The notes beneath the pieces were generated by a model. That model made no database searches. It saw only the letters and a list, made by a program, of their open reading frames with translations, and was not told the origin of the DNA. The position numbers and the translations under genes were made by a program. Shown here piece by piece: positions 24,436 through 30,941 of a DNA stretch of 64,000 nt. Positions within the stretch are counted from its first letter, which is position 1, and each line of letters opens with the position of its first letter. The DNA comes from Hyaloraphidium curvatum SAG 235-1 (lineage: Eukaryota; Fungi; Monoblepharomycota), in assembly GCA_025558095.1 (NCBI GenBank), contig JAIVFI010000029.1, positions 248,001 through 312,000 on the forward strand, in the 5' to 3' direction.

Positions 24436-27221
24436 ATGAGGAAGAAGCGGAAAATCGGCAAGCGGGCGCCGCTTCCGAAACGTTCGAAGCCTTCTAGCGG
24501 CGCTGCGGAACCGGAGGAAGATGTGGAGCTGTCTGGCGACGACCTCGAGTTCCTCGCCGAGTACGGCTCCGGTGCCGGCTTCCTGAACTCGATATCAAAG
24601 ACGGACCTGGAGAAACCGCTTCCAAAGAAGAAGCTATCGGCGCCGAGGCGAGTCCCCGAGGACTCGGACTCTGCTTCGGCTGCATCGGACGAAGAAGCTG
24701 CTTCGGAGCTCGAGAACGGCGAAAGCGATATTGCGTCGGACTCCGAAGGTGCTGCGCCGTCGAACGATGCCGTCGAAGAAAACAAGATATCTGCCAGTGT
24801 GGTGTCGTCGGAAGATGACGAGGTTCCCGAGCCGCGGAAGCGCCGCAAGGCTCCCCCGGACGACGATCAAGAGCGCGACTTTGAAAAGCTGCCTCGCGCC
24901 GCGTTTCGGCCAAAGAACCTTTCGAATAGGCTGCCGATTAAGCTGGCCGACGGTTCCATTGCGTATCAAAACGAACCGGTGCCGGTGGAGCAGATCCCGT
25001 CGGCCACTGTCGAAGAGCCATCGGAAACGGACAGCGAGCCTGGCGGTGCGACAGCAGACATCGGAGCTGCGTCAATCGACGTGGAAGGTGCCGACAGTGA
25101 CGAGGATGTCGACGATCCCGAGGTAGCATTCGCGACGAAGAAGGAAAAGCTCGCTCGCCTTGCCTCTGGGATCCTGGAGGATCCGGAGGGCAAGGTGGCC
25201 TCGCTCAAGGCCCTGCTTTCGCTCACATCCTCGCCGGATGGCCGGATCAAGAGGCTTGGGATGCTCACGCAGCTTGCCGTTTATCGGGATATTGTGCCTG
25301 GGTACCGGATCCGACCCCGAACGGAAGCCGAAAAGCAGATCAAGCTGAGCAAGGAGGTCAAGAAGCGGCAGAACTTTGAGGAGTCTATCGTGTCGTCCTA
25401 CCAGTCGTATGTCCAGCTGCTCGAGAAGACCGCCAAAGGTATGTTGCGATCGCCCTACGAGATGGGCAGCTGCAACGGAGACAAGATGAGACACAGGGAG
25501 AATGACGCGGCGAATGCCTCAACTCCCCTAGGGGGATGGCACGCCGGACTGATTTCATTCAAATTGTTCCTTCTGATCTCTCGGCATCGATTTGTGTTGC
25601 AGGGACGAAGTGCGCGGGAATAGTTGCTAACGCGGACCGCCCGCCACAGCCTTCTGTTCCCTGACTCGGCAAGACATCTCACAGCTGAACCCCAACACTT
25701 TGGCCGACTTGAAGGAATCCGCCGTGGTGGCGGTGCGATGCCAGACTGCGCTCCTCATTTCTCTGCCGCACTTTAATTACCGTTCGGAGCTCCTTCATTC
25801 CGTCGTTGCCCGCATGGCCAGGGAGGACGGGACTTCAATTGGTGCCTCTTCTTGCGCCGCGATAGTGCAGCTGTTCGAGAATGACGTGTCTGGGGAAGTG
25901 TCGCTAGAGGCGGTGAAGGCCATCGCAAAGATGGTCAAGGAACGGCACTTCCGTGTGGGCAGGCGGGTTTTGGACACCTTTCTGCACCTGAAGCTGGACG
26001 CGGCGCGCCGAAAGGGCGAAAAGGACGATTCGGTGGCCGAAAAGAAGCCGGCGTCCAAGCCGAAGGTGCATGTTTCCAAGTTCCAGCGCAAGATGGCGAA
26101 GCAGCAGAAGGAGGTTGAGCGCACTCTGAAGGAGGCGGAAGCAGAGGTCAGCATGGAAGAGAAAGCAAAGCAGCAGACGGAAACCCTTAAGCACGTTTTC
26201 CTGGCGTACTTTCGAGTGCTGCGGGCGTGCCGAGATCGCAAAATCGCCTTCTGGACAGATACTTTGGGGATGGATTTGGTGCTTTCTACCCTCGACGGGC
26301 TTTCCCGATACACCCACATGATCGACGTGGACTTTTTCACCGATCTGCTCGGCACGCTTAAGGACATGGCGGCCCGGGCGACGGAGATTCTGCGGAGTGG
26401 GGACCAGGAAGTGACGCAGACGGCCAATCAACGACGAGCGGCGCTGCTGGTGTCGATTCGAGCCTGCGTGGCCGCGATCCAGATCCTCGGCGGGCAGGGT
26501 GAGGCACTCAACATTGATCTCAAGGACTTTGCCGACACCCTGTACGGTGCGATTTGCGACGTTTGCTTCGTCTCGAGACGTGGCGATGGTTCCGGGGGGA
26601 ATCAGGACGATCCGCTCGTGCTGCTTCTGCGGGGACTGGAGCTATTCCTCTTGAAGCGCAAGGAGCCGGCTCTCGACCGCGTCGCTGCGTTCGGAAAGCG
26701 TGTGCTGACGGCATCGCTTCAACTTGACGAGCAAGGTGCTGCCGCTTGCCTAGCTTTTGTGCGCTCGTTGCTGGTGGTGAGTGACATCCTTCTTTCCGCG
26801 GCGCAGCGTCTAACAGGCGACTTTTCAGAGATACCCTAAGCTGGCCAGCATGATGGAGCCGGACGACAAAGTGGCAGGCCAGGGGGTATATTTGCCCGAG
26901 ATTCCCGACCCCGACATTGCACACGGTCTGTCATCGACCTTTTGGGAGCTCGCGCTGCATCACAAGAGCTTCCACCCGGCCGTCGGCGCCCCTGTGGCCG
27001 CTGTTTCGGACGCCGTAAGCAGCCACAAGGCTAAGTCCGGGCCGGCCGCCTGGGCGTCGGACCCCAGTTCGTTCTTGACGAAGCCCCTTCATTCCGATAC
27101 CGGAAGCTTCGACCCCCCTGCCTTCCCGAAGCAAAGGTGGCGCGAGGCAGGACCCGTGACGGCCGGAACCCTGGACGATAGTGCCTTTGTTCGCAGTCTC
27201 GAGGTGTTGCTCGCCCAGTAG
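24436..27221 (+). CDS. NOC3: Nucleolar complex protein Noc3 (CBF/Mak21 family); alternative in-frame ATG at 24370
   Basis: RLPIK, VYRDIVPGYRIR, PHFNYR, GVYLPEIPDP, FWELAL; introns 25439-25649 and about 26777-26829. Confidence 0.92.
25496..25582 (+). ncRNA. Intronic box C/D snoRNA, predicted guide for 18S rRNA (snR41/U62-like site)
   Basis: Terminal stem GGGAGA/TCTCTC flanks a box C variant ATGACG (25502) and box D CTGA (25573); AATTGTTCCT upstream of box D is antisense to conserved 18S AGGAACAAUU. Confidence 0.7.
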
Positions 27222-27245
27222 ATGGCCAATCCCGCAAGCATCCGT

Positions 27246-27446
27246 CTAGACTTTGCTAGCATTGGCCGGCTCCTCGGCTTCGGGCTCGTCGTCCGCCGCG
27301 TCCTCCAAAGGGACGAAGCTCGCCGCGCTCTTTGAGCCGCTGACGTGACGCCGGAAGCCGCGCTTCTTCTTGCCGCAAAAGAAATATGCTCCCGCGAGAA
27401 TGGCGACGACAATCAACGCGATTACGGCGTAGGCCCCCGTGCTCAT
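27246..27446 (-). CDS. Small single-pass membrane protein (66 aa)
   Basis: MSTGAYAVIALIVVAILAGAYFFC TM segment, then a basic stop-transfer KKKR and FVPLED acidic tail. Confidence 0.6.
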   Translation of the reverse strand: MSTGAYAVIALIVVAILAGAYFFCGKKKRGFRRHVSGSKSAASFVPLEDAADDEPEAEEPANASKV

Positions 27447-27777
27447 TGTCCGATTCAAGAAGGGGAGTGAGATGGGTCCGGAGCTCGTGTCGGGGAATAG
27501 AGGGGTGTAGAGACACCACGCTTCCCGAACACAAAAACTGAGGCAAAAGGGCGCGTCTGCGTCCTCTCGAACGCCTCCGACCTGAGCTAGAGGCCGGTGG
27601 CAAGGGGGGGTTCGTGCGCACGTGGCCAACGGCAAAACGATCGTCAACACAGGGTGGAGACGCTCTGTGGAGACGCTGGCGGGAATCACGCGTCACCTCT
27701 CAACTCGAGGGCTTGCAGAGCTCCGAAAACGCACGTCCGGGACCTCTTTTGCGCTTCCGTTGCGCGGATTCGGCAAT

Positions 27778-29090
27778 ATGGCCGAAACCCCGGACGGCCT
27801 CTACGGCATGCCGCCGTCTGCATTCGAGGCTCTGAACTCCATGTACGCCGACAACCTGGCCGACAAGTGAGGAAACTATTCGATGCTCGATTCGCCTTGC
27901 TCAGTCCCGTTCCCAGGCTTAAGCCATTGGAAAGCTCCGTGGACGCTGCGGTGCCTCCCACGCAGCCCTTTGTGATCCGTCTCGACGGTGTAGCTTTCTC
28001 TACCTTCACCAAAGGACTGCCGCGGCCATTCGACCCGAGGCTGACCGAAGCCATGGTCTCCACGACTGTCGATCTGCTGACAAAGTTCAGCGCCACGCTT
28101 GCGTACACTCAGAGCGACGAAATCAGCCTCGTCTTTCCGGCACAGATGGGGCCGTTCACGCCGTCTGACCTGCAGCAACGGGACGAGATGAAGGCAAAGG
28201 GTCGTCGTGGCGTCAAGCGCAAGGCCGCGGGCGACGACGGCAAGGAAGAGGAGGGAGCGATGGAGACTGACTCTGCGACAGCCGCGGGTCCCGGGGATTT
28301 GGCCGCGGATGCAGGTGCAGCCAATGGATCCACAGCACCTGGTGGGGAGCAGCAGACAAAGCGAGTTGAAGTGCAGCGGACCCACCCCTACAACGGACGG
28401 GTCCAAAAGCTTGCGAGCTGCACCGCTTCGTACGCTTCGGCCAGGTTGAACTACTATCTGCAGAAGAAGGACTGGTCGCATTTGGATCCTGCATCGCAGG
28501 CGCGGATGGTTTCCGCGACGGCCTACTTTGACGGTCGCGTCGTTCCCTGCCCGACGCCTTCGGACTGCGCCGACTGCATATTTTGGAGGTCCAACTTCGA
28601 CGGCTTCCGTAATGCCATTGGCCAGGTCGCCCGGGCGTACCTGTCGAACATTCCGCGGTCCACCGCCGGACAGAAGGACGCTCAGACGAAGCTGCACGGC
28701 CGGGGATCTCGGGAGATGCTCGGACTGCTCTGGAACCAGGCCAAGCTGCGCGTGTTTGGGGAAGGAGCCGTCGTACCGCCCCGGTTCTTGTTCGGCACGT
28801 GGATCAAGAAGGAGAGGTACGAACTGCAAGGGTGCGTGAACCCCAAGACGGGGAAACCTGTCGAAGGACCGGTCTGGAGAACGCGCGTCCGGATTGGCAG
28901 CTTCAACTGGGCCGATTGGAGCGAGCAGGAAAGGGCCGAGTTTGCGATGTGTGAGTGCTTCAGATGTCCGCTGTGTGCCGTTTAGATGACGTCGATCGCA
29001 GCGAAGTTCTGGCCCGGCGGTCCCCGTGCACCTCCAAGGGATCCTTTGGAGGGTTCGGACGTCGAAGCGGACGCTGTTGCAGCCGATTGA
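27778..29090 (+). CDS. Thg1-like protein (TLP), 3'-5' nucleotidyltransferase; possible CUG-initiated long isoform from 27676
   Basis: IRLDG, PFD, YTQSDEISL, YNGRVQKLAS, FDGR motifs; introns 27867-27916 and about 28950-29001. Confidence 0.9.
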
Positions 29091-29111
29091 CAAATGCATA
29101 TATTCGGCCTT

Positions 29112-30941
29112 TCAGGGGGTGAAGCTCATGTATCGTAGCAAGTCAATCTTGGTGACGACGTGCACCACGCGATCGCCCTCTGTCATGACCATTCCGCTCG
29201 AGTGCTTCTCGAAGAAGGACTCCAGCGTCTCTAGCCGTGTCTCTGGCGTGATATCCACGAAAGCGTTGCCCGACCTCTGGAACCGGAACATCACGGAACC
29301 AGCTTTGTCATCTAGGCCGGCCAGCTTGCGCTGGACCTTCGAGAGAATGTTGCCTGGCGGATGGGATGCTCAGATCGGCAGCCAGGCGATCTAGCGAAAG
29401 CAACGTACCAAGTGTGATGAGTCCCACGACCTTGCCGCTGTCCTTGACCACAGGCAGCTGGTCGAAGCCCCCCTTCTCGCATATCGAGACGCACTCCCGC
29501 AGAGGCGTCGATTCCGTGACGGTGACGGCCTGAGGCAGACCCAGATCTTTGACCTTGGCCTCCGACCACGGCACGACAGTCTTGACCGGAGATGCCTGCG
29601 GCACGCTCCCTCGGCGCACCACTGGCGTGTCCATGAAACCGTTCGCCATCATCCATTCGTCGCTGAGGAGCGTGCATCAGCACAATGCCGCTTCGCTCGA
29701 CGGCGGACGAACCTCAGGAACTTTGTCATGTAGTTGCGCACCGAGTCTGGGAGAAGAACCACGCAAACCTGATCCTCAGAGAGCGATTTCGCTGTCCGCA
29801 GAGCGCCAACCATAGCCGTCCCGGAAGATCCACCTCAGGTGGGTAACAGTCAACCTCACCAACGTGGGCTTGCAAACGGCGAGCACACGTACCGACCAAC
29901 AGGCCTTCTTCACGGATCAGGCGCCGCGCCATCACGAAAGCCTCTTTGTCATCCGTCTTGACCCACTCGTCGACCCACTGCCGCTCGAGCACGTCTGGAA
30001 CAAAGTCGTATCCGATACCCTCGATCTTGTAGCTGTGTATGCCCTCCTTGTTCAGCGACTCCGGCAGCGCGAGGATAGAGCCGTTGGGATCCACGCCGAC
30101 GATCTTGACGTTCGGGATCTTCTCCTTGAGCTTCTTTCCGACGCCGGCAATGGTGCCACCGGTGCCGGCGCCGGCGACAAACATGTCCACCTTTCCGCCC
30201 GTGGCTTTCAAAATCTCCTCGGCCGTCCCATCATAGTGCGCAAGCGGGTTGTAGATATTGCTGTACTGGTCCGCTGGCGAGCAAATCGGGCTTCAGACGA
30301 TGACGAACTGCGAGCACACGCATCTCACGGATCCACGAGTCGGGTATTTCCTTGTTGAGGCGGCGCGCGACCCCGATATGGCTCTCGGGAGCATCCCAAG
30401 CTGCTTCGGTAGGCGTCCGGATGATTTCCGCACCGAGGCCCTTCAGCACATCGACCTTCTCCTTGGACATCTTCTCAGGAAGAGTAATGATGGTTCTGTA
30501 GCCCTTTACTGCGCCGGCGAGGGCCAGGCCGATGCCTTCGGGTGGTAGAGATGCCGGTAAGTAAAGTGAAGAAAGTGGGACCCGTCGCAGGCACCTGTGT
30601 TGCCCGAGGTGGGCTCGATGAGAGTGGTGACTCCCGGCTTGATCTTTCCGGCCTTCTCCGCCTCCTCCACCATGCGCCTGCCTATACGGTCCTTGACGCT
30701 TCCCCCCGCATTCATGAACTCGCACTTGACGTCTGGGGCAAAGGTCCGTCAGTCCTGGTGGAGGGAGGACCCCGCAGGAGGCCTCTAGACACCAACAGAC
30801 TTGGCATTTTATGCCTTCAGACTGAGGAATCCTGTTCAGGCGCACCAGAGGCGTGCCGCCAATGGCCTCCAGGATGGTGTCCAGGACGCGCCCCGTCCTT
30901 GGGCAGGCCGATGCCTCGGAATGCGCCCCGTTTGTCGCCAT
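29112..30941 (-). CDS. CYS4: Cystathionine beta-synthase
   Basis: [11 protein letters not shown] lysine, [28 protein letters not shown]-terminal CBS pair ([14 protein letters not shown]); 6 introns. Confidence 0.96.

Follow-up and report, generated by a model that had tools for sequence, protein, structure and literature searches.

HTS1 and VAS1 are the classic dual-AUG genes, in which a long form is mitochondrial and a short form is cytosolic, and the yeast genes ALA1 and GRS1 use ACG and UUG, respectively, as start codons. Mitochondrial tRNA 5' editing has been known in chytrid fungi since the 1990s; to our knowledge, neither the enzyme responsible nor its route into the organelle has been pinned down in fungi. 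Yeast has established cases of mitochondrial isoforms that begin at non-AUG codons (Ala1, Grs1, Hyr1), and prediction suggests that such isoforms are common (Monteuuis et al. 2019, PMC6582344). In vertebrates, Thg1 (THG1L) reaches mitochondria via alternative initiation, and in Dictyostelium a mitochondrial Thg1-like 3'-5' polymerase (TLP), DdiTLP3, is the physiological tRNA 5'-editing enzyme (both PMC5041481). Editing of tRNA 5' ends is documented in monoblepharids and in Spizellomyces (PMC4284800), and the paper on the mitochondrial genome of Hyaloraphidium curvatum states tRNA editing in its title. Given the tRNA editing of H. curvatum and the mitochondrial TLP of Dictyostelium, there would be a biological need for a mitochondrial form of TLP in this fungus. 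The present analysis concerns the TLP gene of H. curvatum SAG 235-1, located at 27778-29090 of a 64,000-nucleotide stretch of contig JAIVFI010000029.1 (positions 248,001 to 312,000, forward strand; hereafter the window), together with the sequence directly upstream of its first ATG. An initial annotation had proposed that a CUG codon at 27676 begins a hidden mitochondrial presequence, so that one gene would give a cytosolic and a mitochondrial polymerase. Comparison with related fungi supports a near-cognate-started mitochondrial form, short of proof. We adopt this reading tentatively and place it a little below an even chance; that CTG 27676 specifically is the start we consider rather unlikely.

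The frame upstream of ATG 27778 was found to be open and free of AUG codons, as had been described, and is closed on its 5' side by a TGA at 27583-27585. The elements of this region are as follows.

27586 to 27777, plus strand: upstream in-frame stretch of 64 codons with no stop and no ATG; 5' leader or candidate N-terminal extension.
27637 to 27639, plus strand: in-frame ACG, ggcaaaACGatc, with A at -3 and A at +4; alternative candidate start that would add 47 residues.
27666 to 27695, plus strand: short DNA block around the CTG, GGAGACGCTGGCGGGAATCAC, alignable in three close relatives.
27676 to 27678, plus strand: in-frame CTG (gagacgCTGg; context gagacgCTGgcg), with A at -3 and G at +4; best-context candidate non-AUG start.

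CTG 27676 is the sole [A/G]NN-CTG-G within the 192 nt 5' of the ATG, and the strong context attributed to it is present. Initiation at this codon would add 34 residues with the composition originally reported (5 Arg, 1 Lys and 1 Glu); the extension ends in R-G-F-G-N, and its R-G-F confirms the R-x-F motif proposed near the end. The AUG form does start acidic. Its first 29 residues hold five acidic and zero basic residues for a net charge of -5, which by composition leaves it without a presequence-like N-terminus. The AUG forms of the orthologues are likewise non-basic. Presequence character was judged here and below by composition and hydrophobic-moment proxies. The ACG at 27637 matches the position of an in-frame CTG in one close relative (L007), within an AACGGYAAA block. 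An in-frame near-cognate codon with no intervening stop or AUG, as seen at both CTG 27676 and ACG 27637, is expected by chance in 8-26% of cases depending on the codon set.

Ten orthologous TLP loci were compared with the window: three syntenic close relatives (L005, L006 and L007; 74-76% protein identity), two Gonapodya loci (L008 and L009) and five loci from other chytrids, namely Spizellomyces 'palustris' (L010), B. dendrobatidis (L011), Geranomyces variabilis (L012), Polychytrium aggregatum (L013) and Rhizoclosmatium globosum (L014). The window and L005-L009 constitute the six monoblepharid loci. All six lack an ATG in any frame for 194-306 nt upstream (Fisher-combined P=0.002), and all six carry an [A/G]NN-(CTG/ACG)-G that is in frame with the conserved start and lies 34-59 codons before it, with no stop in between. 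At this near-cognate site, the window and L005-L007 read CTG-GCN and the two Gonapodya species ACG-GCN. Such strong-context near-cognates occupy frame 0 in 6/6 loci versus 2/12 in the other frames (Fisher exact 0.0015), or 4/12 when GTG and TTG are added (0.011). The narrower combination set in advance (CTG, purine at -3, G at +4) is present in three of the five other monoblepharid loci, with a chance of 0.03-0.04 each. Acidic residues are also unevenly distributed among the frames, with 8 in frame 0 versus 23 and 22 in the other two over the six loci. The first 30 residues of the frame-0 peptides have a net charge of +2 to +7 (+3 to +7 in the monoblepharid six) with 0-1 acidic residues in 10/10 loci, and the window, L005 and L006 have an R-x-F motif close to the junction. 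L007 additionally has an in-frame AUG at -68 codons, a weak dual-AUG feature. Neither a protein-based scan nor an exon-1 DNA pattern found further relatives in metagenomes.

The outgroup chytrids differ in the codon found at this position. In-frame upstream AUGs that would add presequence-like extensions of 19-47 residues are present in four of the five outgroup loci (L010, L012, L013 and L014), and these extensions are absent from the deposited models. The deposited Cladochytrium protein does carry an AUG-started presequence-like extension, which brings the range over five chytrids to 19-95 residues. In B. dendrobatidis the in-frame AUG extension amounts to just 7 residues and is not presequence-like. 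Outgroup extensions open in the classic presequence manner (M-L-S-F-Q-R, M-R-L-F-I-P), and of the 11 outgroup ATGs located no more than 150 nt upstream, 8 share the frame of the gene (P=0.009). The upstream AUG context is weak in three of the four loci, and the deposited models begin at the conserved strong-context AUG. A pyrimidine occupies -3 in 6/7 of the upstream in-frame AUGs examined (six non-monoblepharid and the one in L007); at the conserved downstream AUG, -3 is a purine in 10/11 loci. The order of a weak and then a strong AUG is, as read from sequence, the classic signature of leaky-scanning dual isoforms in these TLPs and indicates that a presequence at precisely this position is normal for chytrid TLPs. 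The deposited models of L010, L012, L013 and L014 thus appear to be truncated at the N-terminus. Their upstream AUGs lie at L010:1917, L012:1860, L013:1890/1902 and L014:1944.

Two further genes of H. curvatum bear on start codon usage in this organism. A six-frame search of the genome (31.9 Mb, 55 contigs) recovered the TLP gene and one other member of the Thg1 family, a canonical Thg1 (G000:C33, L001:1507-1764, minus strand) that is 99% identical to a protein deposited under the name of H. curvatum. In this paralogue, the CTG tccaagCTGgcg (aagCTGgcg) at L001:1722 aligns to Met1 of the orthologous proteins, which begin M-A-K-S-K-F-E-Y-V-K. Upstream of the CTG the frame runs for 14 codons, none of them ATG, before it closes; the first in-frame ATG falls past the catalytic R-V-D-G motif, and no in-frame combination with an ATG-bearing upstream exon was found. 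The deposited model of this gene (P0121) starts at an out-of-frame ATG, apparently a forced choice. Its 42-nt intron, whose donor is GTCTGT, takes out the conserved A-K-S-K and is unlike the introns of 50-59 nt seen in RNA; the donors inspected among the latter were GTGAGG and GTGAGT. Judging from these alignments, the paralogue is probably either a CUG-started gene or a mis-annotation, and A-N-G-CUG-GCG is suggested, not proven, to work as a start in this organism. The alanyl-tRNA synthetase (AlaRS) of H. curvatum (G000:C32, L024) has two in-frame AUGs 31 codons apart, located 47 and 16 codons before the first tRNA-synt_2c match. With T at -3, the context of the upstream AUG is weak, and a classic presequence follows from it; the downstream AUG has a strong context. 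The H. curvatum AlaRS has the dual-AUG layout, unlike yeast ALA1 with its ACG.

Of the described systems, the window most resembles the ALA1/GRS1 type (also HYR1 and HFA1; PMC6582344). Shared with that type are one gene and what would be one mRNA, a main AUG form without a presequence and an upstream in-frame near-cognate codon with no stop or AUG in between; the TLP extension is basic and acid-poor and would target mitochondria. The yeast cases differ in having been shown by mutagenesis, localisation or ribosome profiling, the TLP case being known from sequence and comparison. The TLP further differs in its candidate codon, CUG, and in the non-coding-like codon usage of its extension. A near-cognate TLP isoform, if real, would belong to the ALA1/GRS1 kind, and its mechanism would not be new. 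With THG1L the TLP shares an enzyme superfamily, and the logic of a long mitochondrial and a short cytosolic form is found in HTS1 and VAS1 as well. Their dual-AUG layout is shared by the TLPs of L010, L012, L013 and L014, by the TLP P0011 and by the H. curvatum AlaRS. The window departs from this layout in that all three frames are free of ATG over the 306 nt upstream, which makes leaky scanning between two AUGs impossible there. In Dictyostelium, too, a TLP-type 3'-5' polymerase occurs together with mitochondrial tRNAs in need of 5' repair. Its mitochondrial and cytosolic TLPs, which include TLP3 and TLP2, come from separate genes with predicted AUG-encoded targeting sequences; H. curvatum makes do with a single TLP gene that lacks an AUG-encoded presequence.

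The favoured model is as follows. Most ribosomes would start at the strong-context AUG 27778 and produce the acidic-ended form, which would stay outside mitochondria. A minority would start earlier, at an in-frame near-cognate in an ATG-free leader that we infer to reach past 27676, with CUG 27676 as the best-context start and ACG 27637 as the alternative. The earlier start would add 34-47 basic, acid-poor residues that may act as a cleavable mitochondrial presequence. The extended TLP would then be delivered to mitochondria and, as the putative editing enzyme, repair the 5' ends of mitochondrial tRNAs.

A number of results weigh against this model, beginning with the base composition of the leader. 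The leader is T-poor (17% T), which makes stops and ATGs rare in every frame. Frames 1 and 2 are also open upstream, for 62 and 78 codons, and dinucleotide-preserving shuffles reach the frame-0 run length with P=0.32. Open-frame length was consequently rejected as coding evidence, as all three frames are open in the window and the shuffle P is 0.1-0.66 per locus; combined over the six monoblepharid loci, frame-0 openness gives P about 0.13. Frame 2 of the upstream stretch matches frame 0 in its abundance of Arg and its shortage of acidic residues. Among the shuffles, 8-11% contain an in-frame [A/G]NN-CTG-G followed by at least 15 open codons, and 2.5% contain a strong-context CTG with an open frame and a basic, acid-poor peptide. 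The strongest single feature of the window, and the one that exceeds chance, is the lack of ATG over 306 nt (shuffle P=0.027), which favours a long leader. Taken alone, the sequence facts of the window amount to a mild signal and weak evidence. Every sequence fact cited for the proposed presequence holds, and neither an open frame nor an Arg-rich peptide is confined to frame 0 there.

Codon usage adds to the case against translation of the extension. With a codon table built from 15 long, clearly coding open reading frames of the window, frame 0 of 27676-27777 scored -8.1 (full codon score) and -6.8 (synonymous-only score). Coding windows of equal length averaged +8.6 and +3.2, respectively. 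The full-score means of off-frame windows were -17.7 and -17.6 and that of antisense windows was -3.5 (not pooled), and the synonymous-only mean of off-frame and antisense windows was -5.0. The synonymous-only score of the extension thus falls at the 1st percentile of coding windows, resembles the scores of off-frame and antisense windows and is no better than that of frames 1 and 2. The AUG-started presequence of the H. curvatum AlaRS, a credible one, scores -0.6. AlaRS was the sole usable presequence for calibration; citrate synthase, SOD, MDH, MOD5 and CCA1 had N-terminal introns or no clear start. The gene itself is weakly biased, since the synonymous codon score of TLP exon 2 averages +0.9, and its fastest-evolving parts score low too (-7.1 for the low-complexity insert at 28190-28375 and -5.7 for exon 3). 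The weak bias, the low scores of the gene's own fast parts and the single calibrator make the codon evidence moderate and not decisive. Third-position GC content (0.59 in the extension, 0.69 in the gene overall) makes periodicity uninformative, and RNA structure 3' of the CTG was not different from shuffles (z=-0.68).

The comparison with relatives also holds results unfavourable to an inherited presequence. No frame-0-specific peptide similarity was detected among the six monoblepharid loci over all frame pairs (summed scores of 369, 366 and 339 for frames 0, 1 and 2), and conservation among relatives begins abruptly at ATG 27778. In L005 (at -112) and L007 (at -100), the sequences that align with the block around CTG 27676 are YTGGC blocks lying out of frame, so that the block may be a promoter or leader element. 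The in-frame CTGs of L005-L007 lie farther upstream than the aligned block. With the frames of the block in disagreement and the counterpart of the L007 CTG being ACG 27637, the exact start, if there is one, is uncertain. The CTGs of L005-L007 may further represent one inherited element, which weakens the independence of these loci. In addition, the candidate CTG lies only 74 nt (L007) and 109 nt (L006) from the start codon of a divergent microprotein gene, which leaves little space for a separate promoter and would require very short or overlapping head-to-head leaders. On balance, the proposal of cytosolic and mitochondrial forms from one gene gains from the AUG presequences of the outgroups, the six in-frame near-cognates, the leaders free of ATG, the scarcity of acidic residues, the need for a mitochondrial TLP and the CTG of the Thg1 paralogue, and loses from the non-coding-like codon usage, the missing peptide conservation, an openness shared by all frames, the frame disagreement within the aligned block and the narrow promoter space.

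Public RNA for this organism consisted of one run, as assembled unstranded contigs. One contig spans all of the intergenic stretch 27446-27778 unspliced and runs from 26828 to 27866 without a break. This coverage is in line with the model; being unstranded and merging genes of both strands, the contig tells nothing about the transcription start.

The rival explanations and the favoured model are not mutually exclusive. The stretch 27586-27777 could be an ordinary long, ATG-free 5' untranslated leader, a possibility that we regard as rather less than even. Its open frame and its Arg/Ser/Thr-rich translation would then be by-products of a T-poor, GC-rich composition, and starts at CUG 27676 would be unselected noise. 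A mitochondrial TLP would have to rely on an internal or non-classical signal or on piggy-back import, or another factor would do the editing. The equal openness of all three frames and of the shuffles, the equally presequence-like frame 2, codon usage that is non-coding-like in every frame, the missing frame-specific peptide conservation and the sharp onset of conservation at the ATG all fit such a leader, and ATG depletion is expected of any long leader. It leaves unexplained, however, why a strong near-cognate is in frame in 6/6 loci versus 2-4/12 off-frame and why acidic residues are three-fold rarer in frame 0. It also offers no visible mitochondrial route, though five other chytrid orthologues have AUG-started presequences at the same position.

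Alternatively, the block 27666-27695 could be a core-promoter or transcription-start element, with the mRNA beginning at or after the CTG and the CTG consequently outside the mRNA or too near the cap. The block is alignable in all four close loci, and in three of them its distance to the ATG is about 100-112 nt, with YTG in differing frames; about 100 nt is a usual leader length in a compact fungal genome, and the small intergenic space is shared with the divergent microprotein gene. This explanation is nevertheless improbable in our estimation. Plus-strand ATGs are avoided as far as -306 in the window and at least as far as -194 in the six loci, which argues for a transcribed leader longer than 100 nt; the RNA contig, though unstranded, covers the whole intergenic stretch; and L005-L007 have a second, in-frame CTG farther upstream. 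The extension could also be made for a purpose other than import, as a regulatory leader peptide or for nuclear or nucleolar targeting, with nuclear targeting being compatible with its basic composition as well. The classic presequence openings of the outgroup extensions, the R-x-F motif that the window, L005 and L006 have close to the junction and the known biological need for a mitochondrial TLP make this very improbable.

The identification of the gene as a Thg1-like polymerase is well founded. Its structure and its divergent neighbour are given below.

27246 to 27446, minus strand: gene for a 66-residue membrane microprotein, with 332 nt between its ATG and that of TLP; conserved counterparts in L006 and L007.
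27778 to 27866, plus strand: TLP exon 1, opening at the strong-context AUG (ggcaatATGg) and conserved across all relatives from the ATG on.
27867 to 27916, plus strand: TLP intron 1, 50 nt, GT..AG; spliced RNA contig.
27917 to 28950, plus strand: TLP exon 2, Thg1 catalytic domain with a low-complexity insertion; Pfam PF04446.
28951 to 29001, plus strand: TLP intron 2, 51 nt, GT..AG; spliced RNA contig.
29002 to 29090, plus strand: TLP exon 3 and stop codon.

Both introns are confirmed by one spliced RNA contig from the public run, which skips precisely 27867-27916 and 28951-29001, and the window as a whole is eukaryotic DNA, rich in GC, whose introns measure about 50 nt. Searches were made exon by exon. 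Exon 2 matched the Pfam Thg1 family PF04446 with 97.3 bits (curated cut-off 29.2, E=8.5e-28), and the only solved structures related to it by sequence were those of the Bacillus thuringiensis TLP (4kgk) and a Methanosarcina TLP (5axk). This match and these nearest solved chains uphold the family first assigned to the gene. The Thg1 C-terminal domain PF14413 gave no match in the window gene, and the chytrid orthologues all have PF04446 only; relatives of the Thg1 paralogue have both domains. The closest named orthologues are those of chytrid fungi, with Gonapodya at 42-49% identity. By its domain content, the nearest solved chains and the genome search, the gene at 27778-29090 is the single TLP of H. 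curvatum, of TLP type and not a canonical Thg1. A low-complexity insert rich in Lys, Asp, Ala and Gly (28190-28375) splits the catalytic domain and differs in length and sequence in every chytrid orthologue. No COX1 match was found in the assembly, which accordingly lacks the mitochondrial genome.

The position of the microprotein ATG limits the room for a TLP promoter and leader. The counterparts of the microprotein are a minus-strand reading frame from 2666 in L006 (75 residues) and one from 2566 in L007 (72 residues). The three microproteins have in common a single transmembrane helix, the motif K-K-R-G-F-R-R-H and an acidic tail, and the microprotein has no Pfam match. A spliced RNA contig of 5566 nt crosses at least four genes on both strands together with all the spacers between them (26400-30400) and skips seven introns of 50-59 nt. 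With transcription of this compact genome nearly continuous, assembled RNA contigs are unable to define gene ends here.

The wider pattern admits a further reading, which we think doubtful on present comparisons: monoblepharids would have replaced a weak upstream AUG by near-cognates, CUG in the Hyaloraphidium group and ACG in Gonapodya, and both H. curvatum polymerases would depend on CUG. Thg1 would use CUG as its only start and TLP would use it for the mitochondrial isoform, and current annotations would miss or distort both N-termini. In practice, a systematic annotation gap is flagged by the several deposited chytrid TLP models that appear to be without their presequence and by the deposited H. 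curvatum Thg1 model with its seemingly forced start. If the extension is not real, the locus serves as a caution that open, Arg-rich upstream frames are common in T-poor, GC-rich leaders and should not be taken for hidden presequences. If it is real, a single TLP gene would serve both compartments, which would explain an annotated protein without a targeting signal, and evolution would have exchanged weak AUG and near-cognate starts for one another at one position across a phylum.

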